DNA of 32,358 nucleotides from Klebsormidium nitens. Taxonomy: Eukaryota; Plantae; Klebsormidiophyceae. The stretch is from positions 1 to 32,358 of the forward strand of contig DF237318.1 of NCBI GenBank assembly GCA_000708835.1. The letters are read 5' to 3'. This document shows, piece after piece, positions 6,400-31,829 of this stretch. The position numbers and the translations under genes were made by a program. The notes beneath the pieces are model-generated. The model saw nothing but the letters and a program-made list of their open reading frames with translations, was not told where the DNA came from and did no database searches. Position 1 is the first letter of the stretch. Each line of letters begins with the position of its first letter.

Positions 6400-6534
6400 A
6401 GCGTGATGGATAACTGCCTCTGCAGAAAAGCAAAAAAGTGTAGGAGCCGCCAACCGCTGCTTCCAGGGTTGAGCAGTCAGTGACCGCCACGTCATTTCCC
6501 GCCCTTCTGCACTCCGTGCTGTGCTGTCTTACAG

Positions 6535-8700
6535 TTGCTCCTCTGAGGCTGTTTGGCGAAGCTGCAAAGGGGAGGTCCCATTCCAGTCCCTTCAGAAAAG
6601 ACATGGTGAGACACTAATCTGCTCATTGTCGTTTCTTCATCTGGTCAATCTGCTCATTGTTGTCTCTTCATTTGTCAAGCTGAGCAAGAGTTGTAGGGAT
6701 TCGCTTCTCACACAAGATGGCCGCAATCCTACACAATGCCTTCAGAAAACACGGTACATACATCAATCAGGACGTTCTTCTGGACTACCATCATTCTCCA
6801 GCTAGAGGCACTTGTACCAAACGCAATCGATCACATTGACGAAGTCAGTGAAAGCGATTTTCAGATTGGAAACCAAGTCTTCAAGCCAGACTGGGGAATT
6901 GTTGAACTAGTAGGTTTTCTTGTCCCAGCTCTTTGGGGTGAAGGACATTGGAAGAATAGTGCAGAGACACTAACGAGCTTCCCAGCAAAGCTTGTAGCAG
7001 TTTTAAACGCAGGCTGTAAGTTTGCGCATGGTGTGTACATCCATGCCAACTACAGCACCCCTGCAGACCGCGAGTTGACCTTCTTTGACTATGATAGCAC
7101 TGGGAAGAGGGACAGAATCGAATTTGGTAGGGGAAGTGCTTGCGTAGCCCCAAATATCCCCCAGTATCAGTTGAGGTATCGCGTAGCTGACCTGTTTCAC
7201 AATATGCCCCAGCCTTCCCAGAATCACGCTCAGCAGCTTATAACAATAGATCTCTTTCTGTTGCGACGTCGATTGCAGAAAAATTTGACCTGAGTGGTAA
7301 GTAATTGGTTTGGCCCTCCTTTGTCCATCTTGTCAGTGCCACTCAAATGTGCGATTCTGCTCTTACATGAGACTGGCAACACTGGAAACACAGATGCTGA
7401 CAAGTGTTTGTAGCCTGCCTTACAGGTGGGAATGGACCACAGAAATGAAAGGTACGTCCTTCTGCAGCAAATGCCATTAATCATTCTTAAGCTTGTTGTA
7501 CAGTCAATTCGTAGTGGCATTCAGAGAGTATACATTATTGGTGGTCAGCTTTTGTAGTGAAAGCAGCTCATCTGCTTGTACTGTGGTGCAGGCAAACATT
7601 GGTGCTACGAACCAGATCCATTGAGCGCGGTCAGCTGCAGACATGAAGCACATGCAAGCTCTCCCTCTGTATGATGAAAGCAACTGCATTCGTTGCCTCT
7701 CAGTGAGTGTCGATTTGTTTGGTACTTTTTTTGTCCCGCTGATCAGCTGATCAGGATTGTCTTCTTTGTCCGATCTGATCAAAGTCACTATCTGGTCTTC
7801 TGCAGGGGGGTCTCCAAGTTGTGCTAGCAGAGACATTGTAAAGTAAGTATCCCTGGACTCAATGGTATCACTCCCTGCTTGCAGAGCGCTTGTTCTGTCT
7901 GCCACTGCTTCCAAAGACATCCGCATGAGGGAAAAGCTTTCCAACCTTTGTTGTTCGCTTGTGCAGGGATGTTAATCCAGGGGGTGACTTCCAGGATCTA
8001 GATAGAGAGTTCACTGTCGCACGGAGGGCCGGCCTAGCTGTTGTAACCAGTGCTTTCCGTGAAGGATTTGACATCAGTGATGCTATGGACATTGCTACGG
8101 AGCGGAAAAAATCCCTAGGTCTTCATGGTGAGTTTGCTGTCAGAAAGTGAGCCTATAGTGGCTTGCCGGCTGCAGCAACAATGGCTTGCCGGGAGGGTAA
8201 TGCATCAGAATCTCTGCTCCTCCTGAGCCTTTCTAAGCAACTCAGTAGGTTCAGTATGCATCTTCTCTGAAGTTCCTTCTCAGCTGTCTCGGCACCAGCT
8301 TCAAAGTCTGATGCAGGTCTTTGTGTTTTTGTGTGCACAGCCTCAACAATGAGAGTCTTCCCTGTGCAAGAAGATTCGTTCAGCTATGACGCCCCAGCTT
8401 TCATTGTCATGGTTGCATCACCAAAGGTGGATAGATCTGCGCTTGATGTGAAAGGGGAGTCATTTCTTAGAGGCGGAACACTGGCTGGTGTTTTAATGAG
8501 ACGTGTCCAAGGGGAGAGCTGGGAGGCTCGCCCTTTTGGTGATGCATCTTGGAAGGATGGCGCAAGCTGGCAGGTAGGCCTCAGGTATTCTCCAATAAAG
8601 CCCTTCATGTATTGCCCTAGTAAATTAGGAGCATCGGCATTTATGTTCCTCGACTCTTCTCTTCTCCTTGAAGGACAACATCGAGTCCCCCAACTTTTGA
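6535..8700 (+). CDS. Hypothetical multi-exon protein with short introns; weak TerD-like motif near C-terminus
   Basis: Phase-consistent 3' chain: 7806-7842, 7967-8127, 8341-8573, 8674-8700 (TGA), giving ..SRDIVKDVNPGGDFQDLDREFTVARRAGLAVVTSAFREG..GTLAGVLMRRVQGESWEARPFG..DNIESPNF*. A second consistent chain is 6802 (or 6806)-7015, 7067-7126, 7213-7296. Probable upstream exons are 6535-6605 and 6697-6753 (two possible frames). The link across 7297-7805 and the start codon are unresolved; the start may lie in the gap. Confidence 0.55.
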
Positions 8701-10658: not shown

Positions 10659-13600
10659 TCACCTACCACTCATCACATGCTTGAGCGCCGCTAAGGCGAC
10701 CACGCTGACCTCCAAAGCAGCGATTGGTCGCCCATCCCTATCCACCACCTCTAGTTGCTGGGACTGCAGATCCCGCCCGCTGTGCAGAATCTCCCCGAGG
10801 TCTATCTCCGTGAAGCCGAGCTCGTGGTATTCTCCGAATGCGGCCCCTTCCGTTCCGATGCAGAACGGAATGCAAGCGTCCTCCCCAGCGGAAGAGCGGA
10901 GCATAGCGCACAACTCCTGGCGCGCGGCTGCGTGCGTGGCGGCCGCGAACGAGTAAGCTGCGACGAGATGAGGAACTTGCTTCAGAATTGTTGGCTTCTC
11001 TGCTATCCTTCTCGTCCGTGATCAGGATCAAGTACTTTCGTCACAACACCGCAACGTAAGTCAAATGTCGTTGTGCAAGAGACAACTTTTTGAAGAGGTT
11101 CCGCCATCCAAAGAGGGATGGGAATGACCGGACTGCGAGACGTCGATACGAAGCTTGAGGTGATAAGATTGCATGCCAGTGTGGGTCAAAGAAAATTTTC
11201 GCTTCTGGCGCCTTAAGCCCACTCGTGGATTAAATTGTAAGGGGCGTACTGGACCGCTGTGGGTGAATCACAGATTCCCCTTTTTGAGACATTCAAAGAG
11301 TTCCAGTCAAGAGTTGCTGAGAGAAGCGATTGGAAAAAGCACGGGCATTGCGCTCTCACTTCTAGAGAAGGCGATGTCTAGGAGCGACCCCGTCTTGGGC
11401 ACCGACTGGGTCCTCTGGTCCGTGACCGGTACGAACCGCGGGAGGAAGTCGAAGAGAACAAACACCCGCTGGATGATTGGGTCGCGTACCGCCTCCGAAC
11501 CTAGCCGTAACTGAACCAGGAAAAGGGGCATATTGTCAACCACGATGCTGTGAGATACATTCTAAAAAGGCAGCGAAACAGACTGCAGCGCATAAATTCT
11601 GAAGGCTACTTCAGTCGCCTGCAATTGAGCCAATTCATCTTTCAAAGCATCATCATATTCTTGTTCTCATTTTAAGGCAAACGGAGGTGCAAAGAATTGC
11701 ATCGAGGAGCCAACCAGGCAATCGTGCGCTACGTCAACGTGGCAACCTGTGACTGGGACACTCGCAACCGATTACAAGAGATGACGTCCTCAAGCGAGCA
11801 AGGTGGATATTACTAACGTCGCCCGTTCACACTTTCTTTTGCTGCCTCACCTTATGAATGGTAATGCTCACGACCGGCCCCGCTTCCGGGGGGTTCCCCG
11901 CCCCGACTACGATGCTATGTCTCACCCCCCCGTGCCCTCGCAACCGTCCCACCTGACTCCCCCGGCTGCCCTTGCTAGAGCGTGCCTCGCTAGTGCCGCT
12001 GCTCTCGGCTTCCAGCGCGCCCGCCCGGGCCTTTTCCCCGGGACGTTTCGGGGCGACCCACTCGCTGCTCTCGGCTTCCAACGGTCGCCCTCGGGGCTGT
12101 TCCCCGGGACGTTTTGGGGCGACCCACTCGCTGCTCTCGGCTTCCAACGGTCGCCCTCGGGGGTGCCCCGGGGTGGCCCAACCGACCTCTTCGTCGTCGG
12201 AGCTACCACTGTAGCGGCCGCGCATTCGGGGGGCGGTGCGAGTCCCCCGGTCGGGAGGAGCGTGGAAACGGGAAGGCGTGGAGGGCTGGCTAGATGGAGA
12301 CTGCTGGACAAATGAACAGTTTTTGTCATCAGCAGACCGGGAGATTATTGGAGGTTGCAGCGAGGGACAAGCGTCCCGACCGGAAATATGGTAGCGTACT
12401 ACTCGCGGAATCTGCTCGGTATGCTTCCTCGGGATGAAGATATTCCGCTCGGTCTAGGCCGGTTCACAGAGGCTTAGTGCAACTCTAGAAGCGGAAGCTA
12501 GTGTCCACTCTCTTTGTTGCAAGAGGGCTGCGTGAACGTCCTTCGCGAGTCGTTCTCTACAAACGAACTGCAGTTGCAATTTCACAAAATACATAAATGA
12601 AAGTTTGGTACTCCGTCCTTACCTGCTCAGAGTCGGGTCCCCTTTTCTCATCCGCCCCCCGCCTCCCAGTTGACTCCCGATCACCCCCCCGTTTTGTATT
12701 CCCTCGTTGCGACTTTCTCGTGGGGGCTTGGCTGCCGCTGCTGCCCGCACCCCCGCTAGGGCCAGATCCTTTTCCGTCCTCAAGTCTTCGTTCCTCGCTC
12801 CTTCTACTTTGATCATCATCCTCCGGCCGCCGCTCTAAGGAATTGGCAAACCGCGCACTACTCGTAACGGATGCTCCAGGGGCGTCCAGTCGCCGGCTTC
12901 CACGTGGCAACTTCTCAGTTGGATGCAGAACCTCGTAATCTGCGTCGAGGAGGTGTCCCGCAACAGCTGGGGATGCCGCTCCGGTAATCCTTGTTCCGCC
13001 CGGTTCCGCGCTGGTTGGTGGCGGCGGCGCGCGCCACGAGACTCCCACAGCCAAAGTGCCAACCACCTGACGATTGGAAAGCTTTACGGTCAGAAGCATG
13101 GTGAGAGATAGAGTGCTGACGTCATCATTGCGGCCGCCAACATATGCAAGAGAAGATTGCTGACGTCAGCACACCTGCCTCCCACCTTCCGGCAACTGCC
13201 GTCCACACGTTCGGCCTAACAAAGACGGCCAAAACTGTCGCCCCGTTTGCAATCGAAGACCTTCGAAGCTGGAACCATCTCCTCCGTGCACACACACCGG
13301 AACGTTTTTAGGAAGGATTTGAAAGCGTGACTGTACGCAGCTACGCTACGGAACGCGAGCGGAACGCGCACCTTTCCGGCCCTGTCCTTGACCGGGAGCT
13401 CGCCCTGCAGTCCGCCCGCCTCGATGAGCGCCTTGAGCGGAACTTCCGCCGTGCCCACCAGTCCCGCGTTTTCCAGGTCCGGGTCCGCATCGTCGAGCAG
13501 ATGCACCTGTGGTGGCGAGCCGTCGCTGGTTAGTTGCATAACGTGCGGGTGAAGACAAGCCGTGTTCGGATTCGTATTTGACAGCTTCCAGAGGTTATGA

Positions 13601-16600: not shown

Positions 16601-19600
16601 GCTCGGGTTAAGACACCGGGAGAGATTAACAAGGTAGGGAAAGCCTGCTGGAGACGCTCCCCCCGGGCGGCCAACTAGGCCTCTGGACGAGGGAAAGGGT
16701 GCCCGGTTTAAGAGACCGGCAGAGGGTGAGAGCGTAGGAAGCGTAAGGGTATGGAGTGAGTGCACCGGTCTTGATGCAATTTTCGGGGATGATTTTGCAT
16801 CTTCTGACGGGAAACGACGAGCAGAACGCGGCGAAGAATCGATGTCATCCGACCTTCGAGCTTTATAATGATACATGTGATTGGTCTCGGTATCAGGAGA
16901 TACTTGAATGGCTTTCTTACGTCAGATCATTTTGATCACCTTCGAATCTTGCTAGCAAGAAACTGAAGACATGGACTCTTGTCATGTCTTCGGGTCCCTC
17001 TTCAACTCCTTGGAGAATGCTTCATTCGTTTTCTTATCATCTTATGAACCTGATAAACATCGATAGGTATGTCAATACATATCAAACTCTAAACGGAATT
17101 TATTCTCTCCAATTCAAGTCCGGGAGGCCTTCTTACCTAGCTTTTCGATCTTTCTCGTAAGCTGTCCCTCGAGCTCCTTGGCCTTCGCCCGACTACTCTC
17201 CAATTCCTGATAAAGAAAGCGGACTGTTGTGAGCATTTTTTCTCCTTTTGGCCAAGTAGTGAAGAACGCAAATCTGGAATCGTCGGTGGGAAATTGTCAC
17301 CAATAGGTGCATAGCTCTCACCCCATTGCCACGTGCACGGCAAGCAGTTGGATTGGGATCAACGGAACGCACTGATATCAATCGAACATTGCCGAAGGCT
17401 ATCATCTGCTACAGGAAGATTCCAGTTTGCTTGCTAATTATTGGCCCCAGTACTTACAACGGCTGAAGCCTTATGCTTCATCGTCTTTCTGCAGGAATTG
17501 ATCTGCCAACGTACCTGCTTCAGCTCCTGAACTGTGTTTTCCGCTTGATGCAGTTCCCGCTCCACGGTGTGAAGCTCCGTCAGCTAAGAACGAGAAATAG
17601 AAGGCATCAAGTTTTGATGCGAAACCAGGTTTGAGTGCACGAACTCTTGCGAAGCGCAGCCTCTTCGCGTTACCTATTTTGCTTTGTGCCCTGTGGCCAG
17701 AATCACCTCCAGGTGGCAAGCCCCAGATTTCGACGACCTGCATCGTCAGCACGGGCTCTTAAAAAGCGTGTGTGCATGACGGCACCAGAATATTATCCAG
17801 TTCTCTTCAATCCGGGTTGTCTTCAGTCCAGGAATCTGAGTCACATCCGCCCGGACGTATGTCCACAAACTACGCTTCGCAGACCCCGACAAAGGCACGA
17901 AATTTCGATTCTTCTTTTTCTTTTGAGTACGCGCTGCTTAGATGATCACAAAGATCGATCTTACCTGTTCCGTAAACGCCGTCCGGAGCTCATCCAGCTC
18001 TAGCTTCAGGTCCCGCTGCTCGGGGCTTCCCCCCTGGGAACTCGCTCCGTTTGCCTTGACCTCCGCCAGCCGCTGCATCAGCCCGGTGGGACCGCTCGGC
18101 CCGTGCTGACGTAGCTGCTCCGTCAGCTGATCCACCTGCCGTAAGTTGACGGGTTTCTCATTTATCCAGACAGATACCTGACAGTCAAAGTCAAGTATTG
18201 TCGAGACAGATACATGAAAGCCGAAACGCAATAGCGCGTGCAATCAAAGGCCAGTCTCCGTTGCCTGCTCCGTTGGCGGCGTGCTTAATTTCGAAGGATA
18301 TGCTCTTGGATTGCTTGAATGGATTGCGTTTTCCGAGGGTTTGGTTAGGGGGTTTGGTCTTATCCATCGAGCGGCCGCAAACGAACTAAACAAACAGAGG
18401 CCGTCGCTCGGAACGGACTCGAAGCCTGAGAAGGCTCAAACCGGGAATGGATTGCAGTCCAGCAGAACACGAGTCTGAGAGGCACGTACACGTCAACCCT
18501 ACAGGGCTAAATTACAAACTCCAGTTTCGAATCCAATTTCACATAAAATGCCCCCAAAAGATCACACATTTAGTTGAAGCCGCCGAAAACTCACCATAAG
18601 CGTGACCTTCCCAAGCTCCGCCCGCGCCCCGTCCCTCTCCGCGCGCGCCTCGCGGACCTCCGCCTCCGCCTGCTGCGCGCGCACGAGCGCGCGCTGCGCG
18701 TCGCTCGCCTCTTTCCGCGCCTCCGCCTCGCGCAGCTCCGCTTCGGCGGCCTGTTTCTGCGCGTCGGCCAAGAGCGCGCGCGCGCTTTTGAGCTCCGCGA
18801 GCGCGCTTTCGGGCGCGGCCATGGCCTGAGCGAGGAGGGCGACGTTCTCTTTCTCAAGCGCGAGCCGCTCGCGGCGCGCGGTGTCAAGCATGGGCGCGAG
18901 CTCGCGTGCCGCCTCTAGTTGTAGGACGAGCTCGGACTCACGTGCGGTGAGGCGGGCCACTGTTTTGCGCTCCTGCACCAGAGAATCCGCCCTTCGATTA
19001 CTTTTCTTCCAACGGTGTTTTTTAGTGTAAGGTCCCTACAAAGGCCGCGTGCTTCGAACGAACAGACCGGAGAAAGCTTAAGGACTCGTGTAAGAACCAC
19101 GGAAAATCAGGTGAACAGCACGGGAACGATGGAGACTTCGCCTCCCAAGGAGCGTCTTCAACATATGAGGGAGTAGCACCCGACCGGCGGGGTCTCCGTT
19201 TTGCGCACCCAACTTATCGTAAGTCGTAGGGCTTAGTAACGTACCCTCCAAAACTTTGACAAACCTCTACCAGTCTTTTAGACGGAACTGCTCAAGTGGC
19301 GAGGCAATGAGCTACCTGGTTCAGTTGCCGATGCGTCTCCTCCAGTTGCTGCAGCGCCTTCTCGTGGTTCCCGTTAATACTCGCGAGCGCCTCCGCCGCC
19401 GCGTCATACCGTTTCTGCAGGCTCGTTACCCGTTCCCACGCCGTTCGTAGCTCCGCGCTCAGATTGCTACTTTCTCCCCCCATCCTGATCCCCGCAAAGG
19501 TACCCCCCTGGACCGTGCTTCTTTGATTCACACCGAATCCCGCGTCCGCAACCATTGCCGCCGCGGCTCGCGCATCGGCCAACTCGCGGCGCAACCGCGG

Positions 19601-22087
19601 CACCTCATCTAGTTCCTTCCTGAGTCTCTGCAGTTCTTCAAGTTCTTGCCTCAGTCTCGGCACCTCTTCCGCCTCTCTCCTAAACCGTTCCGCTTCCGCC
19701 GCTTCCCTTCTCAGCTGCGGAACCTCCGCCAGCTGTGCCCTCAGTCCTTGCACCTCCGCGCTGAGCTCAGCAACCCCTCCCCCCGAAACCGACGCCGTCC
19801 TCCCCAGGGGGCTCTTCGGCAGTGCGTTTCCTACCCCCCCAGCCGGCGCCCGCTGCTCCAGCGTCCCAATTTTCATCCTGAGCCCCAAGTTGTCGACTTG
19901 CGCCGCCGCTAGCTCTTTCTCCAGCGCAGCCAACTTCTCCCTATATGCTTCCTCGGACGCCTGTAAGAACGTCCGGGGGGGGTTCTCCTTCTGCTGATTC
20001 GCCCCCCCCACGCTCATGCTGAGAACACGGGTGGTTGGGAGAGCGCTCATGGAGCGCTGTCGGTTAAGATTGGCGGGGCGGGTCGTGCGTGTCAGACGCA
20101 GAGTCTCCTCGAGGCGGCCTTTTGAGGTCTTTGCGAGTGCCTTGAAGTGGAGAACGCGTTCCTTCTCCCGGGTGCACGCCCGCACGCTTTCCCGCAGCTT
20201 TTCCTCCAGTTCCACCACACGCTGCAGACAAAGAGCGGGAGCAAGAATGCATAAGCCATATGGAGCGAGAAGGATGTGCAAGGGCTTCTGAGATGGAGAG
20301 CGCGTTCTTTCGCGCGCATGCACGCCCGCACGCTTTACGCAGCTTTTCCTCGCGCTTTACCGCACGCTGTCGAGAAGGAAGCAGGAAAGGTCTGAATACT
20401 TCCACAAGGCAGGATAGTATTGTCAGGGTCTCAAATTGGAGGATGCGCTTCGTTCTGCGCGGGCACGCGCGCACGCTCTTTCGAAATTGTCCTGGGGGTG
20501 GAACACGGGCTAAGATATCACAAATTGTCGGAACTGAGCCTTCAAAATGCGGAATTTTGACGCTACTTTTAAAGTCGAACAATTTAGCGACCAGGCATAA
20601 GCTGTCACTTGTAAATGCTTGCGAGCACTTGATCTGCCTCGACCGAGTCTGCTAGCTTTGACCTTGCTCAAGCAGAACGAGACAGTCGAGAAAGCTTGTA
20701 ATTAATAAATCGGGAGTGTAAAATCTCCAATGAAGGCGAAACGTCACGGAATCGTGGCATTCACCACCGTCAGAATTGCGTATCAGTCAGGTTTGTAACA
20801 TCGAACCTTCTCCATGGGTGGACACAAAGACGGCCGACTATCGCATCCCGCTCGCTATCCTCACCTGCTCGGCTGCAAACTGTAGCGCCACATTCCCCCC
20901 GCTGCGCACTCCTGACGCCGTCACGATGTCAAGTCTCATCTTGCGTTTGGCCGCCTCCTCTGTACGCGCCAACCGAGCCAACAGCCTGGAGATGACAGCA
21001 TGCAAATTGAGGAATGAGAGAAGAGCTAGCTACTGAGGGTGCGCACGGGTAGGTTTGTATATGCAAGATGCGTAGTTGCATCATTGGTCCAGTGGCCTTC
21101 ACACGTCTGTGGTAATACACCTCAAAAGCTTCAGAGCGTTCGTCGCTGATTTATCAATAGCTGAAGAAGATTTCATTGCCCCGATTCCATCAGGACAAAC
21201 ACGGCTCGCTGTTCTGCTGTTACAGAAAGCCTTTCGCCGTGTTTAACGTGAACATGCTCTGGCTCCGCTCCGTCGCAATCAACCGTCATTTTCTCAAGAA
21301 GAAAGATTCTGCACTTAGTGTTTACGGTCTACTCAGCAAGTCAAACTGTTCAAAGAGCTGGACATTCTGAACCGTTTCGCTCACATCTTATTCCTCTCCT
21401 CCTTTTCCGCAATGTCCTTCTTCAGCTGGAAGTTCTCCTGCTCCAGCGCCAGCAGCCGCTCATGCTCCGGCCCCGTCGTACACGCGCTCATGTTTCCCAT
21501 TCTAGTTGTTGCGCCTTTGCTCCGGAGCAAGCTGATTGCAGGGTCTGGCGGTGGGGGTCCGCTAACGTTGCTGTCAGTTTCGCCTTCCATGTATGCGGGA
21601 AGGCTCGGCCCAGCGGCCGTCACAGAGTGGTGCATCATGAGCGACTTGGAGAAAGACTTGGTGCCGGCCATCGATTCCCTCATAGACGCTGCACAAATCA
21701 AGAGCACGCTTGCATGGCTTGGTTTGCTTGCAGGGTGGTGCTCTGAGAGATGATGCAGGGAAGGCTTCGGAGGGGGGCCGAGAATTTGTGAACAATCTTT
21801 TTGCCACTTGCAGATGAGCTGGCTGCCCCTGTGATTTTGCAGGAAGAAGGCGCGAAAGTTGATGCCATCTATTTCATAAAGTCGAACCAGGACAGAAACT
21901 ATGTCGCTGATTAGCCAAAGGAACATGCAATATGCTGTGGGCTAGGAAGATAAGGCAGTCAACGCTTCTCTTTCTTACTGCCCCTCCACCAGCATTGTCT
22001 TGCATGGTAACCGTCAATCTACTGTGGTTAAATTTGAGTTGCAAGGCGGTCCAAGGCGAGCTTACCTTGATGCACTGGAAACTCCAT
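10659..22087 (-). CDS. RPGRIP1L: RPGRIP1L/MKS5/NPHP8-like ciliary transition-zone protein (N-terminal coiled coil + three C2 domains), ~1480 aa, 18 exons
   Basis: Fully phase-consistent minus-strand chain: 22087-22066 (tentative), 21688-21385, 20985-20865, 20221-19316, 18972-18607, 18135-17965, 17583-17515, 17206-17137, 16582-16356, 15695-15612, 15321-15220, 14774-14565, 14218-13895, 13506-13372, 13066-12623, 12300-11851, 11510-11360, 10957-10659. Family-like segments include ERLLALEQENFQLKKDIAEKEERNKMLLARL, long coiled coils and RGERLRQVEGQLKRFLAG. C2-1: NIVELRV..DPHTFLTFDFYEHDTQATGVV..NIQYVVNVDDFFLSY..LLVELH. C2-2: PYCSYCFPGYPVHDT..PNPHFAD..LVGTAEVPLKAL. C-terminal C2: IQRVFVLFDFL..ELGFTEIDLGEILHSGRDLQSQQLEVVD..IAALEVSVVALAALKHV. 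The first exon and start codon are less certain. Confidence 0.88.
11997..12160 (-). repeat. 66-nt (22-aa) coding tandem repeat in the RPGRIP1L linker
   Basis: PRGRPLEAESSEWVAPKRPGE(Q/K) twice, plus a partial ..LEAESSG copy. cgctgctctcggcttcca recurs at 11997, 12063 and 12129. Confidence 0.9.
16545..16745 (-). repeat. 100-nt tandem duplication of a 3' splice site and exon start (RPGRIP1L)
   Basis: On the minus strand the real site is ttaacccgagcactttgtctctcctccag|aagccgagctgtccgcacggggggagcgcctccgacagg. The upstream copy is ttaaaccgggcaccctttccctcgtccag|aggcctagttggccgcccggggggagcgtctccagcagg. The AGs are exactly 100 nt apart (16583-85 and 16683-85). Confidence 0.85.
19577..19726 (-). repeat. 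Five 10-aa (30-nt) coding repeats in the RPGRIP1L coiled coil
   Basis: EVPQLRREAA EAERFRREAE EVPRLRQELE ELQRLRKELD EVPRLRRELA. Confidence 0.75.
20140..20515 (-). repeat. Two decayed intronic copies of the 5' end of the large RPGRIP1L exon
   Basis: The real site is cag|cgtgtggtggaactggaggaaaagctgcgggaaagcgtgcgggcgtgcacccgggagaaggaacgcgttctcca. Copy 1 is cag|cgtgcggtaaagcgcgaggaaaagctgcgtaaagcgtgcgggcgtgcatgcgcgcgaaagaacgcgctctcca. Copy 2 is aagagcgtgcgcgcgtgcccgcgcagaacgaagcgcatcctcca. The shared anchor falls at 20181, 20327 and 20470. Confidence 0.85.
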
Positions 22088-23184
22088 GCTCTGTTTGTGT
22101 CTTATTAGACCTTTTCACAGTCTTATGTTCGATCGTGTTGTGTGCATGACTGTGCAATTCCTCCCACGTTTTTAGTGATGGCCGTGTTTTTGTCGGCGGC
22201 TGCCGTAAGCGACTAAGAAGGCAATGCTGTCTTTCTCGATTGCATGTTGCAAAGCCAGTACTGTGCAATCCAACTCTACGACAACTAAACCATTCAGCTA
22301 CTCCGCTTCTGCGAGCGTCATACCCTCCAGACTGGAGATATTCTTCCCAGGCTCTTCGAACAGGATTGCGACATACAATGCTGCGATACCGCATGCAATG
22401 CTGCGATTATTTCAGCTTCGCAGAGAACCTGCCAAGGAGCAGCCGCAGGGCTTGATGTTATCACATTGCTGAAGGCCCCATTAGATTCTGCTCATCCAGG
22501 CTCGCGCCTAAACTTACAGTAACTTACTATTACTGAACTGTGAGAACTCCGTCCATCTCATAGACCGACGCATATGCAACTTTAAGGCACAGATCCAACC
22601 ACTGTAGCCTAGACTAGGTGTGCTTACTAGGTAAATACTAAGCTGTACAGCGCCAGCTGAAAAGCCGGCCGATAGCGTGTGCGCCCTATTTCTGCAGTCA
22701 CTGCATCACTGCACTGAGCCCTTTGGAGCTACTACGGTACTACGCACAGTACTTCCCGTACCCTCATAGACTAATCAGCCTGTACAAACATCGACAGTGC
22801 GTAACGACACATAACCGTCGTTTGATACTAAGTCAGCTGGTATAGATATACAGTTCGCGCGCGTACATTGACTTTGCCCCCCCGGTTTTGAAAAGGAGTA
22901 CCCCATCTTACTCAGTTGGGGGGGCGAAGGGGGGGCGAATCGCTTGCCTTCTTATACCCAGACAAAGGTTGCCGCGAATTCGGAAGCGCTTCTCGCATAT
23001 TTCGGGGGCAGTGTGGGGGAGATGCAATGGCCCTGCATAATTCAGATTGCGACATTTGTCTTCGTCTGGTTCAATGTTACTGCGCAAACGTCTCTGGTTC
23101 AGAAAAGTTGGATTCACCATGTCCAATGCCAATACTTTCTAGCACCATGAAAGACAGTCCACATTCACGGGCCCCTAAGAAGCC
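22088..23184. promoter_or_regulatory. Divergent (head-to-head) intergenic region, presumed to hold both promoters and 5' UTRs
   Basis: Lies between the inferred start of RPGRIP1L (-) and the start of the AAA+/4Fe-4S gene (+). It contains a doubled GC-rich motif gggggcgaa at ~22918-22939. Position-based inference only; no TSS is visible. Confidence 0.45.
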
Positions 23185-26100
23185 ATGGCGACAACAAGGA
23201 TATTGACTGCTGCTAGCAACAAATTGCTTTGCACCTCAGCAATTGCGTGTGGTGGAAAGACATCAGGAGTGCTTGAATCTTGCGTCTTCTGTCCGAGCTC
23301 TCTTCAATCTGAAAAGCTATCTCAGCACTTACCACCACTTTTCAAATCAGATTTTTGTAGCTGCCAGCCTCAGAAGTCGTTCCAACCATCAAAAGTTGCA
23401 GGAAGGCGTGTTTCACAGACTTTGCCAAAAAAAGTTAATTCTGCATTGTCTGGGCAAGCTGACGTGGGGGATCAACACCCTGATGTCCAGGTATATCATT
23501 CTTCTGACTGCTTTTGAAAAGAAGCACTCAGAAACAAAATGTTCTCAAGTCGCTGTATGCAAGATCTTGCACTGGCAAGGTGCCCTCTTTGAAGATGCTT
23601 GCACTGATGTTCTGCCGATTTTATTCTCTCTCAGCAGTACCTTTTGCAAGTAGTGGTTGTCCAAGTCGCTTGCATAGTGGGTGTCGCTTTGGCTGCCTCT
23701 AAAAAGACATTGATGCTCTGCCACCCAAGGATTCTGGAATCTGATGGTTTTTGTGTTTGGTACCAGTCTGGTTCCTTGACAAAGGGCTTTTATGAAAAGG
23801 CCATGATTGAGTTCATATAAAGGTACCCATGCGAAAACTGAAAACGAAGACAAAATAAGAATGTCTACAGGTCAATCATTGAACAAGTCATCAACTGTCT
23901 AGAGCGCATCCCTTCAGCAGACATAGTGAGAACATTCGAAATCATTATTCAAAGATCTCTCTTCTATCCAAGTTTCGAGCAGGAAAGACCAGTACGTTCT
24001 GGCCCAGTGTTTCAATGAATGTTTAGCCACCACATCCTGCAGGACGAAGCAGCCAGGCAACATGCACTGCGGCCGCATCTGGTCAACTGCCCCCGCAGGG
24101 GGGTCATTGGGAACTCCCGTTATGCTGTGCGACTTCGGAAGGAAATCGTGCAGGCAGCAAAAGACAAGAACAGGTACATTTGATATGTGCAGTGGTACTG
24201 ATCCAAGAGATCTTTTGTTTCATTGACTAAGGTGAAGCACAATGTAAAAGTGGGGTATGCTCTGGAGGCAAATGGAATCAGGAGCTCAAAATCTGTTAAT
24301 TTCTTCCTATGAGAATCTGTGTTTAGTACATTGCTAGATTCCTGATACGACTTGACAGAACTAAAGGGACCTTCCGCCCCATGAAAGCTGTTAAGACTAT
24401 CCCCAATAAAGTCCCCAAATCTTTCCCAAACAAGCTTCGCAAACTTCGCGTCTCAAACACTCCTCCTGCAGGAGCCCTGTCCTTTTCTTCGGCGAGCCTG
24501 GCCTGGAGAAGGACGGATACGCAGCTCTGGTGCATTTCGGCACCCCTAACCGCTCCAAGAATATGGTGCGTCTTGACTGCCATCGCCTGGGCCGCAGCGC
24601 CGTTGAGCTTTTTGGAAGCAGGGCCCGGCCCGGGCTCCTGCACTGGCTGGGGGACGGGACTCTTCTGCTAGACAACGTGCTTCAGGTGAGCCGTCCTTTT
24701 GTTTCCGTTTATGACGCATGTTAAGCTCTCGCCTGAGCAGGTTTCTGCTCATCTTCGAAGACGTTTCTCCTTCAACGGAGCGGTCTTTGCACTGGCTGGG
24801 GGAGGGCACTCTTTTGCTAGACCACGTGCATCAGGTAGTCTGTATTTCCGCCCCTTTCTTTGGTTCCCCATTACTGGATGGACTCCCAAAACCCTTGCCT
24901 GAGCACTTTCTGGCTCGTTTTGGGGGGGGCCTGTACTCGTTAGGAGAGGTCTCTGTGCTGGCTGGGGGGCGGGACTCTTCTACTAGACAACATGCATCAG
25001 GTGCGTCACTCTTTCATTTCCCTATCTCGTTCCTCTCGCTCTGATTTCTGATGAGTATCATTGCCTGTTTCTGTTTTTCTTCCATTCCTACTTACTGGAT
25101 GGTGTCCCCAAAGCCCTTACTTCCTGCCAATTTTAAAAGGCACCGTTTCGTTCTAGGCCAAGGAGTCCTGCGATGGGCGATTGACCGCTCTGGCTGAAGA
25201 ATGTGCATAAAACGCCATGTTTATGCTTTGTCCTCTCTGTTCGTGTTCAGCACTTTCTTGGTATGAGGCTCTAAGAGCACCTAAGGATTGGTCTGGTCTC
25301 GCAACTGGAGGAGTGCCGCGCCACAATCCAACTTGAAATCCACTTGCATCCAGCTATCATTTGCATCAAGTCTCCAAGCGCTAAGCCCGAAATCTGGAAA
25401 CCACTTCTGACCCTCGATGAACAGATCGAACAACCCTGATTGGGAGTTTCTGACTGAAAGGCTGCTTGAAGAAGATTTTATTGCACGTCACGCTGACGAA
25501 AAGCTTTATGAACATCCGTGCAGGCTCATCCCGTGTTCCTGCAAAACCTCGTGGATCTATTGCGCACGGGCACCTACCGACCCGCATCGAGCACCCGTCT
25601 CGAAGCCTGGGCTCAGCCAGATGGTAATTATCTGGGCCAACGTCTCCTTCTCTCCGCCTCTACAAGATATCCTTACCCGCATCTTAGTGCTGCTGTTGTA
25701 TCGGTTCTTCTCGCTCGCTCTTGAATGTAGAGACGACTGTCTAAAGGCTCTCTTATTTGAAGATCCCTCTAAGTCTGTGTTAGCCGACTTGGTTCTCGAA
25801 TCAACGGAAGGCCTTAAATTTTGCGTTTCAGTTTAAGCAATTTACTCTTGACACTACTGATGACTTCGAGGACAGCAAAACGAAACTCGTAACGCGCCAT
25901 TCGACTTAGACACTCCTAGTAATTTTGAAAATAGAAAAGCAACCGAATTGAGCGTCGCAATTTCAATTGCAGAAGGGGTGACAATGGAACCGGTGCGGCA
26001 CAGCCAGGCGCGCATCATCTTGACGGCCGAAGGGACGGTTCCGGCGCTCGAGCACCTGGTGACGGTGATCAAGGTGAGCACAAACGGAACGAGAACTTCA

Positions 26101-29100
26101 CGGGTTGCGGCACAACGGAAACGGAGCTTAACGGAAGTGAAGCTGAACGGGAATGGATGTGCAAAGTCTGCGCTTGCTCCGGCTCTGACAGGTTTAAAAT
26201 TTGAGAAAAGTCTAGTCAACAGAACTACTTGAACCAAGTCTTGAGTCAGCACCCTGCCGTGTGAAATCAAACTCATACTGAAAGACATCCGCTTGCCTCT
26301 TAGATTGGTTTCGGCAGAAAGCTCGATGAATAAGTCGCTTATAAAGTCTGCTTTTCTGTCTTATAAAGTCCCTCCACCTCCACGTGCGCCCCTACCGCAT
26401 TCCCCTGCTTGCCGCCTATTTTTCGTGCCAGTACCGATCCAGCGCTGAAACTTGCCGTTCAAACCCGTTGAAGCTGAGATTACTCGCTTATGTGAGATTC
26501 GTTCCTTGTCCCGTCAGGTTCCCCCCCTCCGTGTGCGCCCCTCAGACATTCCCGCCTACCGCCTCCTGCCTGCGTCGCTGATTCTTCTGTATTTTCAAAC
26601 GTCAGGCTGAAATTGGATATTCACAGGGCTTGAGTTTTTCTAGGCTGCTTCTCTTTTCTTTCAGGTTCTCTCCCTCCGCGTGCCCCCCTTCGACACCCCC
26701 CCCCTCACTGCCTACTTTCTGCGCCAGTCCTAGTGTCGCTGGTTCTCAGAGACATTCCCTCGAGCATGTCAAACGTTCGGGCTGGACTGAGTGTTGATAT
26801 GCGGTAAAACCGTTTCTCCTTCAGGTCCCCCCCTTCCGCATGCCCCCGTTCCGACACCCCTCCCCTTACCGCCTACTTTCTGGGCCAGTATCGATCTTTC
26901 GCTGAGCAAAGTTCCTTGTCCCGTCAGGCTCCCCCCCTCCGCGTGCGCCCCTCCGACATTCCCCTCCTCCCTGCCTACTCACCCGTTCAGTTTGAGATCA
27001 AACAATAAGATGAAAACTTCTCTCGTCAGGTCCCCCCCATCCGCGTGCGCCCCTCCGACATCCCCCCCCTCACCGCCTACTTTCTGCGCCAGTACTGCGC
27101 GCAGCACGGCGCGCGCCCCATTGTGCCCACCTCGGAGGCGCTGCGCGCGCTGGAGACGAGCCCCTTCCCCGGAAACGTGCGCGAGCTCCAGGCGGTCCTG
27201 GAGCGGGCCGCGCAGAACATGGCGGACGGCGAGACGCGGCTCACTGCGGACGTCCTGTGGAATACCGCCAAGGTGGGGCCGGAAGTTGATTGAAAGTTTT
27301 TGACCTTATTCTTCTTCTTCTTCTTCCTTTCTGTGTGCAATGATCTGGCCACAAGCGTGGAGTCTGCAGACTCGTATACGCGGTATCGTAAAAGCTGGTC
27401 ACAGGTCCGTACGCGTTTGGCAAGCTTCGAGTCGCTTTTCGGACAGAAGGCCCCCTCTTCGCCTGGACCTGCTCAAGGCGTGCCGCCCCATGCGCTCCTT
27501 CCCAGCCAAACGACCAGCAACATACTTTCACCCCTAAACAGCTCGACTTTCGTTCTAACCACTTTTTGACTACCTTTAACCATCTCTCGACGATCGCCCG
27601 TCTGATTCCCGTCTGATTCTGACCCGGCAAAACATTCCCCTCTTTGCAGCAAGGCCACGACTTCTTCCGCCTTTACTTCTGAAAGGAGGGGGGACGATAC
27701 ACTTCAGTCGGAATAAGTCGTCTTCCCCTGCTTGCGCGCTCTATTGGTTCGCACACTCCAGTCGGACCTTGCTTGCGTGCTCTCTTGTTGCGAACCAAAC
27801 CAAAACCAACTCGCGCCATTCACAGCATGTTTACGCTGACCGTCTCCAGCTTTTCCATTCTCGCAGCAAGGCCACGACCCCTTCCGCCTGGACCTGCTCA
27901 AGGCGTACCCCCCCCTGCGCTCCTTCCTCCGCAGCGACTTCTGGCCACGGGAGATCAACTTCGGCTTCACCACCTACGTTTTCGCGGCAACCGTGGCGCT
28001 ACTGCTGTTCGGGCCTCAAGACCGAGAGCACAACGTCGCGCTAACCGTCTTCTGGGCCTACTGGTGGCCCGTCCTCTTTCTGATCTACCCCTTTTTGGGC
28101 CGGGTCTGGTGCTCGGGTGAGAGTTCCGTTCCGGTCCGGTCCGTTCCATTCCGTTCCGTTCCGTGTATAAATTTGTGGCTACGGAACCCTGAGGTTTACT
28201 CACGGACGGGTGTGAGCGGCTCGTGCCGGGCTGTTCCGTCGATTGTGTTTCTGTGTCTGCGAAACCAAAAGGCTCATCGATGAACGAGAGAAGCCCACTT
28301 CCTCACGGCTCGATGTCTAATGCATTTCAGGTCAGCCTGACTTTATATATTATTGGCTATATTCGTCATGTTTTTTCACTTGATCCCCAACGCATTCGAC
28401 GCCGGAAGGCTTGTTTCAAGCTCATCGTTTTCTGTTACGTTCAGCGACCTTGCTGGGACCGGCTCCGGTGCTCAAGCGAGGGCTTCGCACCGGGCGCCCC
28501 TCCTTTAAGGATGGAAACAATAAAATCGACCATTCTAGTTGCACATTGACTTTCTTAAGATACGAAATGATCCTTGTTGGGTTTCGCGGAGTCCGGTTGA
28601 GCGCAGCTCGACAAAGTGTAACGTTGCCCCTCATCCCAGCCAGAGAGCGTTCTTAGAAAGCACCGTTGCGTTACTTCAGCAACCCGAGAGTACAGCTGGC
28701 GGAATAATGAGTAATTAAAAGCTTATCACTAGAAGCTTAGAAAGCAAGGAACACCCGGGCGTTGCCATCTTGGCTTCCCGCGTTTTTGTCCAGCACCAGC
28801 CCGGCCCCACCTCATCTCTCCCGGAACCTATTCCAAGTCACCCATCCTTCTGAAGTCACTTCTTCTTAGGCTGCCACTCCTAAAAGCGCTAAACCTCTTA
28901 TTTGAAAGGACGGCTCTGACTATTTCCCGTCTCTATCCTGCAGTCTGCCCGTTTATGATCTATGGCGAACTGGTGCAGAAGTGGAGACTGGGCACGGGAG
29001 CCAAGCTCTTACAGTGGCCTAGAGAAACAGGTAGGGGTTGATTATCTATTCTGCACTGGGCTTCGTGGGACGCGTGTCACAGGGCGACCGATGGCCTGAA

Positions 29101-31829
29101 GTCTCACCTTCGCAGTCGCTCGAGAAAGCCACGTGCTTCAAATCCGCAACGACACGCAGTCGTTATCCTCTACGTGGATGTCCCGTCAATATCTAGTTCA
29201 CTGGGCTGATTTACCATATGTTAACAGCATTCAATACGCTGGGCTGACCGTTCATAAGCTTGAAAAAGCCAATACGCTTTTTCGCAGAGCAGCTATGGTG
29301 CTGACGAAAGCCTCTGGCGCTAGCCCTTCGCTCTGTGCGATTCTGACGCGACATATTGAGTATACTGCCAGGGTGAAGAATGGCAGAAGATTCGCTCTCT
29401 TGTGGTATAGTACGATTGACGAGTAGACGCCAACGCTTTCTCGCCTTTATGAACAGGGTTCCCATCTCTGTGGACAAATTTACTGTAGCCGGGTTCAGAA
29501 GTCCGAGCATTCCCTCGCATGACCTAGCATCACAAAGCCCCGAAAAGTAAGATTTGGAGTCGCACCAAATGCTCCCCGTGCATTTTTGCAGCCGAGACCT
29601 GGGGCCCCTGGTTCCTGGTGTCCCTCTTCGGTGCGATCCTGGTCTGGGAGGACGTGTGGCACCTCAGCTCGCACGCCGCGCTCTCCGCCGGCCTCCTCTT
29701 ATTGATTACGTCAGGCGCCGTCATCTGTTCCGCCGTCTTCGAGCGCCGGCTGTGGTGCCGCTACCTGTGCCCCATCGGCGGAATGAACGGACTCTTCGCG
29801 AAAATGTCGATGACCGAAGTGCGCGCGCGCCAGGGCGTCTGCACCGGTGCGTTTTCCTCTCCCTCTCTAGTTGCGCGTCTTTGTCTGGAAGTGACGGCGT
29901 TTCTGTCACCTTGTAAGTCTTGGGTTTTGACGCGCCCGTTGGCCAGAGAAAGACTCTTCGACGGTGGATTCGCTGTTGGAGACAGCTGGAGACTTTCATC
30001 CCAATAGAAAAGATGATACAAATTCTTGCGACCCGCCGGGTCTCAATGAGGGAGGCAAGCGGGTATCTTTCTGTTTGATCATATATGGAACTTGGATTGA
30101 GCGAGTTGCTTCGTTTGAGTTTGGAAACCTGCCCGGAAGCCAGGTTAGAGTTGACAGCAGTCTCCGTCTCTAACTTATGTCGAAACCGCATGGACTGACT
30201 TGCCTAAAGTTTGGTTCGGATTTTGCCTGAGGGGAGGCCAATCGTCTGACTTCCTTATTTCACGTCAGCCCTTTACTTTCAATTGTGCCTCCGTAACCTC
30301 GACGATAACCGAAAGCCGATAAGGACACCTCTTCTGACGACCTTCCAATTTTCAAAAACCTCACCGCTCAGCATTTCACAGTCAGTCCGCATGATGCCCT
30401 TCCCGTCCTGACGTGGCCCTTCCCTCCGCAGCCACGTGTCAGACGTACCACTGCTACAAGGGCGGCCCGGCGGAGCCCCCCGAGGGCTTATCCACCGGTG
30501 GCTGTCCTGTTCACTCGCACCCGGCGCAGCTCCCGGACAACAAGAACTGCGTCCTGTGCATGGACTGCCTCAAAGCGTGCCCCCACACAAGCGTGGAATT
30601 CAACCTGAGACCCCCCGGAGTGGATCTGTGGACCGGTCACAAGCCGGCCACGTCAGAGGTTACGCTCATGTTCATGCTGCTAGGGGGAGGTGCGCTTCGC
30701 CCACCCTTTGTTTCTGTTGCCGATTCTTCCCCGCAATCCTTGTGTGCGTTGTCCTCGTCACGGTCTTCTTCCTTGTACGACTTGGATTTTGTTTGCCGAC
30801 GGCTTTTCTGAGGAACGGGCTCAGTGGGTGTTGAATGTGAGCACCTTTGCGAGGACGGCGGTCTGAGTAGGCCCCTCTTTGTTCTTCTCGATCGGACACA
30901 CGGAAGCAGCGGAATTTTCCGGAGTCCCCGGATAGACTGCCGCGGGGCTTTGCATTGCTCTGAAGATTTCCGAAACTGATCTTAGGGGCGATACTCATGC
31001 CCATGGAAGTGCTGTCGGCTGCGATACCAAAATCAGTGGCCCCTATCATGAAGCAATGACACTTCCGGAATAGTAAGCTTTGAAAATAGTAAGCTCACCA
31101 GCCTGGGACGGTTAGGGTTAGTTTGGGGGTTTTGTGTGGGTACGGGTGCGGAGCAGGTAGGTTTTGTGGGTTAGGATTTTAGTATTTGGTTTGAGCTTAC
31201 TGTTCCTGAAGCTTAGTTTCCTAAACTGTCGCGACATCCTATCACGTTGCATGGAGGAGGTGGGCCTGGCCTGCAACAAACGCTTACTCCCCACGCTGGC
31301 GTCATGTCTTTTTAACCTGTTTGCAGTGTACCTCCACCGCGCACCGCACCTCATGAGTCAACTCGGACTCGAGCCTCTCCTCCTCGACTCAAAGCCTATC
31401 CATGTGGGGATCGCTTTGGCGCTTCTGTCCCTCCCTGGCTTTGTTGCTTTCGGAGTGGACTCAGCGACCCGCTTCTACTCCGAAACGCGGCGGGCCGTTA
31501 AACCCGCGCCGTTTCTGCACCTGGCGTATGGGTATCTTCCCTTAGTGTGGAGCGCTACACTCGCCCATTACTTGTTCCTTTTCCTAGTCGAGGGAGGGAC
31601 TCTTCTCCCCGTAACGGCAGCGACTGTCGGGTTTGAGGATCTAGGACTTCCAAGTTTTGTGGCCGACTCTTCTGTTGTAGGATTTCTTCAGGGGTCGGTT
31701 TTGATGGCGGGGGCCGGTCTGAGCTTGGCCCTCACTCGTAAGCTAGGGAAACGACCATGGAGCGCGTTGTGGCCCCAGTGCACGACGATTGTGGCTTTCA
31801 CGGCCGAGTTGTGGGCACTGATTCTATGA
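23185..31829 (+). CDS. Putative plastid-targeted fusion of a sigma54-activator-like AAA+ domain and a polytopic membrane 4Fe-4S (NapH/FixG-like) domain, cyanobacterial type; 11 exons, 815 aa
   Basis: Phase-consistent chain: 23185-23490, 24043-24173, 24472-24685, 25524-25623, 25973-26073, 27030-27272, 27867-28116, 28944-29030, 29592-29846, 30432-30689, 31327-31829 (2448 nt incl. stop). AAA+-like part: RGVIGNSRYAVRLRKEI, VLFFGEPGLEKD, ELFG..GTLLLDNV, VPPIRVRPSDI, FPGNVRELQAVLERA. Membrane/Fe-S part: FWAYWWP..GRVWCSVCPFMIYGE, ERRLWCRYLCPIGGMNGLFAK, CTATCQTYHCYKG..GCP..CVLCMDCLKACP, plus many hydrophobic helices. Exon 1 is Ser/Thr/Ala/Lys-rich and transit-peptide-like, with ATG context aagccATGG. 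Confidence 0.92.
24635..25130 (+). repeat. Tandem decayed copies of an exon 3' end and 5' splice site (3 copies)
   Basis: ctgcactggctgggggacgggactcttctgctagacaacgtgcttcag|gt (real, ends 24685); ttgcactggctgggggagggcactcttttgctagaccacgtgcatcag|gt (24834); gtgctggctggggggcgggactcttctactagacaacatgcatcag|gt (25000). Downstream intron text (ttactggatgg..cccaaa..ccctt) is also duplicated. Confidence 0.9.
26361..27100 (+). repeat. Five decayed copies of a 3' splice site and exon start upstream of the exon at 27030
   Basis: The real site is tcgtcag|gtcccccccatccgcgtgcgcccctccgacatcccccccctcaccgcctactttctgcgccagtac. Homologous copies have AG ending at 26368, 26517, 26664, 26824 and 26927. The 26517 and 26927 copies share gttccttgtcccgtcagg exactly. 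Confidence 0.9.
27440..27930 (+). repeat. Two decayed copies of a 3' splice site and exon start upstream of the exon at 27867
   Basis: The real site is cgcag|caaggccacgaccccttccgcctggacctgctcaaggcgtacccccccctgcgctccttcc. Copies are cag|aaggccccctcttcgcctggacctgctcaaggcgtgccgccccatgcgctccttcc (AG at 27446) and ttgcag|caaggccacgacttcttccgccttt (AG at 27649). Confidence 0.85.
28123..28164. repeat. Imperfect (GTTCC)8 pentanucleotide microsatellite just after a donor site
   Basis: gttcc gttcc ggtcc ggtcc gttcc attcc gttcc gttcc gt, starting 6 nt after the GT at 28117. Confidence 0.85.

Follow-up and report, generated by a model that had tools for sequence, protein, structure and literature searches.

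KFL_003690030 of Klebsormidium nitens: a NapH-type membrane iron-sulphur protein with a degenerate enhancer-binding-type AAA+ module, of cyanobacterial descent

KFL_003690030 is a nuclear gene of the streptophyte alga Klebsormidium nitens, located on contig DF237318.1 of assembly GCA_000708835.1. The whole stretch of 32,358 nucleotides (nt) that was analysed is referred to here as the window. The gene encodes a protein of 815 amino acids (aa) in which a AAA+ module of the bacterial enhancer-binding protein (bEBP) type is followed by a nine-helix membrane module with iron-sulphur (Fe-S) cluster motifs. It provides a clear case in which a bEBP-type AAA+ domain has become a non-catalytic part of a NapH-type Fe-S membrane protein and has persisted in a eukaryote. 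On balance, we lean towards the view that the protein acts as a regulated (gated) membrane Fe-S oxidoreductase of cyanobacterial descent, probably in the plastid. The family is conserved and listed in databases, with its function not studied as far as we found, and is not a new kind of system.

The gene model was built by tblastn with an 841-aa homologue from Nostoc linckia (L026 3474-5999) together with reading of the splice sites. It comprises 11 exons on the + strand at 23185-31829, with all ten introns of the GT..AG type and a coding sequence of 2448 nt. The modelled protein is identical, residue for residue, to the NCBI entry "hypothetical protein KFL_003690030" of K. nitens and is thus an already annotated gene without an assigned function. 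RNA evidence was taken from Logan contigs of four runs in three studies, compared over 23100-29099. These contigs, of up to 2957 nt, omit exactly the modelled introns 1-6, all GT..AG, so that the first six junctions are seen directly. Beyond 29030 they run into the first bases of exon 9, with a 255-nt piece that matches the length of this exon. The exon 9-10 and 10-11 junctions are based on identity with the annotated protein and on homologue alignments that continue unbroken across the joints. The structure of the RNA contigs indicates that KFL_003690030 is transcribed and spliced as modelled, with a transcript start near 23075. An in-frame stop codon at 23176-23178 stands directly before the ATG. 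The parts of the gene are as follows.

23075 to 23184, + strand: 5' untranslated region with approximate transcript start; a 2836-nt spliced RNA contig starts ~25 nt upstream of 23100.
23185 to 23490, + strand: exon 1, residues 1-102, a disordered Ser/Thr-rich presequence (putative transit peptide).
24043 to 24173, + strand: exon 2, linker helix and start of the AAA+ module (GNSRYAVRLR); tblastn identity of 52% to Nostoc residues 142-185 and RNA joints.
24472 to 24685, + strand: exon 3, deviant Walker A (GEPGLEKD), shortened L1 without GAFTGA and Walker B (LLLDN); Pfam Sigma54_activat (E 2.8e-5) and alignment with NifA.
25524 to 25623, + strand: exon 4, AAA+ helix (LVDLLRTGTYRP); tblastn and RNA contigs.
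25973 to 26073, + strand: exon 5, AAA+ strand (ARIILTAE) and a segment without arginine fingers; RNA contigs and alignment with NifA.
27030 to 27272, + strand: exon 6, AAA+ lid (VPPIRVRPSDI ... PGNVRELQ); Pfam AAA_lid_14 (E 2.4e-16) and RNA joints.
27867 to 28116, + strand: exon 7, amphipathic linker, predicted transmembrane helices TM1 and TM2 and the first Cys of CxxCP; tblastn identity of 52%, Fer4_5 and helices 390-449.
28944 to 29030, + strand: exon 8, rest of WCSVCPFMIYGE and a predicted stromal loop; tblastn, with RNA continuing into the start of exon 9.
29592 to 29846, + strand: exon 9, TM3, TM4 and WCRYLCPIGGMNGLFAK (CxxxCP motif); Fer4_5 (E 1.3e-6).
30432 to 30689, + strand: exon 10, two [4Fe-4S] motifs (C565...C587-P and CxxCxxCxxxCP) and TM5; tblastn identity of 68%, Fer4 families and invariant Cys.
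31327 to 31829, + strand: exon 11, TM6-TM9 and the stop codon; tblastn identity of 41%, helices 671-814 and no Pfam family.

The membrane module carries the motifs on which its redox assignment is built. Pfam searches with the exon pieces return Fer4_5 twice (E 1.3e-6 and 0.03), in addition to weak matches to Fer4 families. A pattern search places CSVCP at residue 447, CRYLCP at 533 and CVLCMDCLKACP at 602, and the cysteine positions define a further segment, C561-x3-C565-x4-C570...C587-P. In an alignment of 60 family sequences Cys 447, 450, 533, 537, 561, 565, 570, 587, 602, and 612 are invariant, and Cys 605 and 608 are conserved in at least 90%. The cluster cysteines number eight, which fits two [4Fe-4S] clusters. 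When the membrane part is modelled alone with AlphaFold2, the predicted local distance difference test (pLDDT) is 92 and the predicted template modelling score (pTM) is 0.90. The counts of Lys and Arg in the loops fit the positive-inside rule for an orientation in which the cytoplasmic or stromal side holds the AAA+ module, the Fe-S domain, and both Cys-pair motifs, and the C-terminus faces the other way.

The closest named NCBIfam match is the NapH/MauN family TIGR02163 (E 3e-13, profile positions 71-254 of 255). The score of 49.8 bits compares with a cut-off of 213 bits, and that of PRK09477 is 37.5 against 234. NosR is a weak profile match and the CcoG profile TIGR02745 gives E 0.73. Judged by these profiles, the membrane module is a distant NapH/MauN relative and not a member of the family. 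No Pfam match was obtained for the FixG_C domain, or for any family in the last 190 residues (TM5-TM9). Structural neighbours of the complete 450-aa module in the ESM Atlas, at TM-scores of 0.8-0.97, belong to the cyanobacterial family, to stand-alone bacterial proteins, and to fusions. The stand-alone proteins are of 470-510 aa and come from Chloroflexota, Actinomycetota, and Thermodesulfobacteriota. The fusions join the module to Caa3_CtaG, COX2, and NosL, all of which are tied to copper-centre enzymes or to the assembly of copper centres. From the same superfamily, CcoG reduces Cu(II) and contains two [4Fe-4S] clusters (PMC7558416). The copper-linked fusions and CcoG are treated here as leads, not proof.

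The AAA+ module retains the bEBP fold and has lost most of the features by which such proteins work. Pfam matches to Sigma54_activat (E 2.8e-5) and AAA_lid_14 (E 2.4e-16) were obtained on the exon pieces. A full-length AlphaFold2 model, computed from the 60-sequence alignment (pLDDT 82.7, pTM 0.71), runs from a helix at 99-114 through an alpha/beta AAA+ domain and lid (about 120-365) to nine long helices, the fourth and fifth of which are separated by a small Fe-S domain. Foldseek gives TM-scores, normalised by target, of ~0.8 to NtrC1 and PspF. A HMMER alignment with NifA contains a 9-residue deletion exactly at EKGAFTGAV, and the GAFTGA loop is absent from all 60 of the aligned family members. 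Walker A reads GEPGLEKD, as against the consensus GxxGxGK; its Lys is kept in at least 90% of the 60 sequences, and the residue before this Lys is usually Glu instead of Gly, which a few cyanobacteria retain. Walker B reads LLLDN, as against hhhhDE, with Asn at the second position of the acidic pair in at least 90% of the family; the pair is D-N in KFL_003690030 and mostly N-N in cyanobacteria. The segment that corresponds to FRxDLYYRL, which would carry the arginine fingers, is shortened and contains no Arg, as judged from the NifA alignment and comparison of family motifs. No helix-turn-helix (HTH) or other DNA-binding family was found, and the 450-aa membrane module comes directly after the lid.

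Among solved structures, the closest sequence match of the cyanobacterial protein is VpsR, an atypical bEBP. VpsR likewise lacks GAFTGA and reads N-D at Walker B; it is devoid of ATPase activity and serves as a receptor of cyclic di-GMP (PMC6158489). From its motifs, the AAA+ module of KFL_003690030 would bind nucleotide at most, and would be neither a motor nor an activator of transcription. We read it as a regulatory or oligomerising module.

The preliminary description of this stretch, made from the letters and open reading frames, had proposed an intact 815-aa spliced nuclear open reading frame that joins an NtrC/bEBP-like AAA+ fold to a multi-helix membrane domain. The reading frame is borne out by the 11 exons with GT-AG introns, the RNA contigs, and identity with the annotated protein, the AAA+ fold by Pfam and Foldseek, and the membrane domain by the nine modelled helices and the Fer4_5 matches. 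The CxxCP, CxxxCP, CxxxCxxxxC..CP, and CxxCxxCxxxCP motifs that it named lie at 447, 533, 561-587, and 602, respectively. The fusion itself is real. Its proposal that the AAA+ domain has no sigma54 partner now rests on stronger evidence than it had offered, namely that GAFTGA, the loop for contact with sigma54, is deleted. The cNMP-binding domain of the cyanobacterial proteins (cNMP, cyclic nucleotide monophosphate), the degenerate AAA+ motifs, the paralogue, and the existing annotation lay outside that description.

The cyanobacterial relatives of the protein are numerous and close. A search with exon 9 found at least 278 loci at 70-75% identity in species-representative bacterial genomes. 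Among the matches listed, the informative titles are all cyanobacterial except for one metagenome bin labelled Acetobacteraceae; this locus (L021) carries a typical cyanobacterial copy and is probably a mis-binned contig. The cyanobacterial homologues are of ~840 aa and consist of cNMP-binding domain, AAA+, lid, and Fer4_5 in the same order. Residues 104-815 of KFL_003690030 are colinear with them at about 48-52% identity, and 244 of the 316 columns that are >95% conserved among 73 cyanobacterial sequences are kept. Four motifs that the preliminary description had assigned to an uncharacterised cyanobacterial family (SRYAxRLR, GEPGLEKD, WCAVCPFMIYGE, and WCRYLCPIGGMNGLFAK) are indeed consensus motifs of these 73 homologues.

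The N-terminus is where the algal protein departs from the cyanobacterial one. In the cyanobacterial homologues a cNMP-binding domain comes first (Pfam E 1e-11 to 1e-12). Residues 1-110 of KFL_003690030 have no Pfam match, and tblastn detected no trace of a remnant of this domain in intron 1 or upstream. In the RNA contigs exon 1 is joined directly to exon 2 (23490 to 24043). This joint confirms that the cNMP domain was lost in the Klebsormidium lineage and replaced by a presequence of ~95 aa. Residues 1-95 are disordered in the AlphaFold model (pLDDT <50), and the protein part of exon 1 is rich in Ser and Thr with few acidic residues. K. nitens also encodes a paralogue, KFL_007280100 (820 aa, 77% identical), with the same 11-exon structure and intron positions. 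The N-terminal 95 residues of the two proteins show no similarity and the remainder is 73-77% identical, while both N-termini are Ser/Thr-rich and poor in acidic residues. This pattern is typical of transit peptides, and the presequence of KFL_003690030 is regarded as a putative one. Based on the presequence and the cyanobacterial ancestry, a plastid membrane is the probable site of KFL_003690030. On the algal side of the tree the cNMP domain is patchy, with at least eight state changes, some of which may be artefacts of gene models.

Homologues were sought with one protein each from cyanobacteria and Trebouxia, with the last exon, and later with KFL_003690030 itself. Orthologues were found in Trebouxia, Coccomyxa, Myrmecia, Apatococcus, Elliptochloris, Chlorella, Micractinium, Botryococcus, Monoraphidium, Scenedesmus, Ostreococcus, Picocystis, and Prasinoderma. 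In the Chlamydomonadales they occur in Chlamydomonas incerta, C. eustigma, Edaphochlamys, Gonium, Volvox, Astrephomene, and Sanguina. The family is therefore present in three phyla of the green lineage, Prasinodermophyta, Chlorophyta, and Streptophyta, the last through Klebsormidium. No land plant appears among 30 of the best of 239 matches to the last exon (HMMER, 1.84 billion cluster representatives), nor in the top 120 of two word-index searches with algal queries. Judged among the matches listed, the family is likely absent from land plants. Of the groups that the preliminary description had proposed to check, chlorophytes and a streptophyte alga carry the family, and no land plant is seen among these matches.

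A maximum likelihood tree of 75 rows was computed with a quick IQ-TREE run (LG+C20), unrooted and without early-branching cyanobacteria. The 32 cyanobacterial rows other than Spirulina, together with one further row (P0164), split off with a Shimodaira–Hasegawa-like approximate likelihood ratio test (SH-aLRT) support of 99. The same split has a support of 91 when the long Spirulina branch is included. The opposite side of the tree holds all algal rows along with rows from metagenomes and transcriptomes. Support for the pairing of the two Klebsormidium copies is 100, and the branching of the algal groups broadly follows the species tree. As the tree is unrooted and the early branches are unsampled, the algal clade stands beside the sampled cyanobacteria and not nested in them. 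The nearest non-algal relatives among named matches are all cyanobacterial. This bears out the cyanobacterial origin that had been proposed for the gene, whereas the nesting within cyanobacteria that was expected with it was not recovered. The tree fits a single ancient transfer from cyanobacteria, either endosymbiotic or by very early horizontal transfer into the green lineage, and the most probable date for the acquisition of the gene is that of the plastid itself, or close to it. It also fits vertical descent in green algae followed by a recent duplication in Klebsormidium.

For the favoured function, a regulated membrane Fe-S oxidoreductase, the following course can be proposed. A soluble stromal protein, for instance ferredoxin, would donate electrons, which would then reach an acceptor lying within the membrane or beyond it, perhaps a quinone or else a metal ion, for which Cu(II) is a candidate by analogy with CcoG. 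Both Cys-pair motifs and both predicted [4Fe-4S] sites sit at the mouth of the nine-helix bundle, on the same side as the AAA+ module, and throughput would be set by nucleotide state or oligomerisation of this N-terminal module. If the protein is a regulated reductase, it would bear on the supply of electrons or reduced metal to the lumenal side in oxygenic phototrophs, and on why land plants have apparently dispensed with the gene. The family is open to genetics in Synechocystis, Synechococcus, and Chlamydomonas.

A fuller version of this proposal, to which we give a rather low probability, is that the protein is a hitherto unrecognised, ferredoxin-fed, nucleotide-gated reductase shared by cyanobacteria and green-algal plastids. 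It would reduce a metal (Cu(II)) or feed an acceptor in the thylakoid or envelope, and its pseudo-ATPase ring would serve as a switch responding to ATP/ADP or to a second messenger. Should this be true, energy charge would be coupled to redox chemistry at a membrane in a new way, and no other bEBP-type AAA+ is known that works outside transcription and within a eukaryotic organelle.

Several observations weigh against a regulated oxidoreductase. The profile scores lie far below the cut-offs, and hence the substrate cannot be transferred from NapH or CcoG. The membrane fold is without a solved relative: Foldseek returned nothing that reached E 0.001, the top VIA-align score among about 48,000 chains was Z 6.5 and came, like the other matches, from generic helical bundles, and a sequence search of solved structures matched the AAA+ and cNMP domains only. 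When the open reading frames around 80 cyanobacterial loci were clustered, no gene neighbour or operon partner was conserved across orders. Synteny in these loci is local to clades and involves transaldolase, DUF4351, a response regulator, Rieske, FtsZ, and LtrA. In K. nitens, KFL_003690030 is a stand-alone nuclear gene without nap or mau partners. With regard to the plastid, some algal gene models begin right at the cNMP domain and have no presequence. A general role in copper supply is weakened, as land plants use plastocyanin and seemingly do so without the gene. Lastly, no biochemical or genetic study was found for any verified member of the family.

The alternative that survives best is the reading of the preliminary description, a membrane-tethered sensor of redox or nucleotide state, in which the Fe-S module would sense and the AAA+ module would relay through a partner, with no net catalysis. 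We consider it possible, if unlikely. The AAA+ module is conserved despite being catalytically dead, the ancestral protein had a cNMP sensor, and relatives of the VpsR and FleQ type are receptors of second messengers (PMC6158489). In addition, the NapH-type relatives NosR and NirI, a weak match here, are curated as 'transcriptional regulator NosR'. However, the protein has no output domain and no conserved partner gene. The complete NapH-type set of two Cys pairs and eight cluster cysteines is invariant, which goes beyond the usual needs of a sensor, and stand-alone membrane modules are widespread in bacteria without any signalling domain.

It is doubtful that the protein is a cupric reductase like CcoG, which would provide stromal or cytoplasmic Cu(I) for delivery by P1B-ATPases to plastocyanin or cytochrome oxidase. 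The CcoG/YccM superfamily does share Fer4_5, two Cys motifs, and two [4Fe-4S] clusters with it (PMC7558416), and structural neighbours are fused to CtaG, COX2, and NosL. Synechocystis slr1529, a possible member of the family, responds to high copper by repression, if within a general stress response (PMC4182526). This has to be set against the E of 0.73 for the CcoG profile, with NapH/MauN as the best named match, and against the 80 cyanobacterial loci, which have no copper-gene neighbourhood. Land plants, moreover, need copper for plastocyanin and apparently lack the gene.

A genuine sigma54-type or NtrC-like transcription regulator is suggested by automatic database names and the Pfam Sigma54_activat matches, and is extremely improbable given that the sequence contradicts it: GAFTGA is deleted, the Walker B Glu and the arginine fingers are lost, and a nine-helix membrane module takes the place of the HTH domain. 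As all of these features and a DNA-binding domain are lacking, the AAA+ module is not a sigma54 activator, and the names 'sigma 54-interacting transcriptional regulator' and 'nitrogen assimilation regulatory protein' are misleading. Sigma54 itself is not known from cyanobacteria or plastids. Bacterial contamination of the assembly, or a dead relic, could be suspected from the strong similarity to cyanobacterial proteins and is given virtually no credence, as the gene has ten spliceosomal GT-AG introns, spliced transcripts in three studies, an intact open reading frame with 244 of 316 family-conserved residues retained, a paralogue with the same intron positions, and orthologues across green algae.

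No paper was found for the K. nitens gene identifiers, or for this domain combination in cyanobacteria or Chlamydomonas. The family can be called uncharacterised, as the preliminary description had it, in that no functional study was found in the literature. Synechocystis slr1529 ('ntrX') is presumably a member, a putative assignment made from the shared legacy name. Expression of slr1529 falls to 0.29-fold under high copper, as part of a general stress response (PMC4182526). Other reports describe repression in a broad response to iron deprivation, an antisense RNA, and a viable knock-out with altered metabolites (PMC4182526, PMC3516471, PMC5318462).

The introns of KFL_003690030 contain decayed copies of exon edges that the main transcript does not use.

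24787 to 24855 and 24953 to 25021, + strand: two decayed copies of the 3' end of exon 3 with its donor, in intron 3.
26365 to 26435, 26501 to 26553, 26648 to 26731, 26822 to 26892 and 26911 to 26994, + strand: at least five decayed copies of the acceptor and the start of exon 6, in intron 5.

Intron 9 of the paralogue likewise holds two copies of the 3' part of exon 9 (L081 9322-9417 and 9672-9749). Among the duplicated edges, transcripts use only the copy that adjoins the intact exon. These decayed tandem copies look like intron growth by duplication of exon-intron junctions. A (GTTCC)8 microsatellite at 28123-28164 marks the start of intron 7, directly past the donor.

Elsewhere in the window, a run of N at about 5400-6400 is an assembly gap of ~1 kb and accounts for the low-GC bins at 5001-7000. 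At 18562-20323 on the - strand there are long open reading frames rich in Glu, Ala, Arg, and Leu (AELREAEARKEA..., with repeated EVPRLRxEL units), which suggests a gene for a coiled-coil protein upstream of KFL_003690030 and on the opposite strand. In the region 11803-12329, LAALGFQRSPSGLFPGTFWGDP occurs twice as a short direct peptide repeat and is preceded by a third copy that has diverged further. The region is GC-rich with open reading frames on both strands, and more likely represents a tandem repeat of DNA than a coding stretch.

Compared with known systems, KFL_003690030 combines features that are otherwise found apart. VpsR (PDB 7v2b), Brucella NtrX, and TyrR, like it, have the bEBP fold with its lid, lack GAFTGA, and depart from the Walker B consensus. 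These proteins are soluble, carry receiver and HTH domains, and act on sigma70 promoters, whereas in KFL_003690030 the AAA+ module is joined to a polytopic Fe-S membrane module and no DNA-binding domain is present. With NapH and MauN it shares four helices, two Cys-Pro motifs at the cytoplasmic face of the membrane, and a C-terminal di-cluster ferredoxin region. It differs in that the first motif is CxxCP and not CxxxCP (a 2-residue spacing), the first cluster motif is atypical, five extra helices follow at the C-terminus, a 260-aa AAA+ module precedes at the N-terminus, and there is no NapG or nap context. CcoG, FixG, and YccM are, like it, Fer4_5 membrane proteins with Cys motifs and two [4Fe-4S] clusters (PMC7558416), while the FixG_C Ig-like domain and a ccoGHIS context are missing from KFL_003690030. 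The nearest counterparts remain the cyanobacterial homologues, exemplified by those of Nostoc linckia NIES-25 (L026 3474-5999) and Acaryochloris marina MBIC11017 (L028 3456-6002). Both share GEPGLEKD, the Walker B Asn, the lack of GAFTGA, the Cys-pair motifs, the cluster cysteines, and the C-terminal helices with the algal protein. They begin with a cNMP domain, in place of which KFL_003690030 has a disordered presequence, and the algal gene is divided by ten introns.

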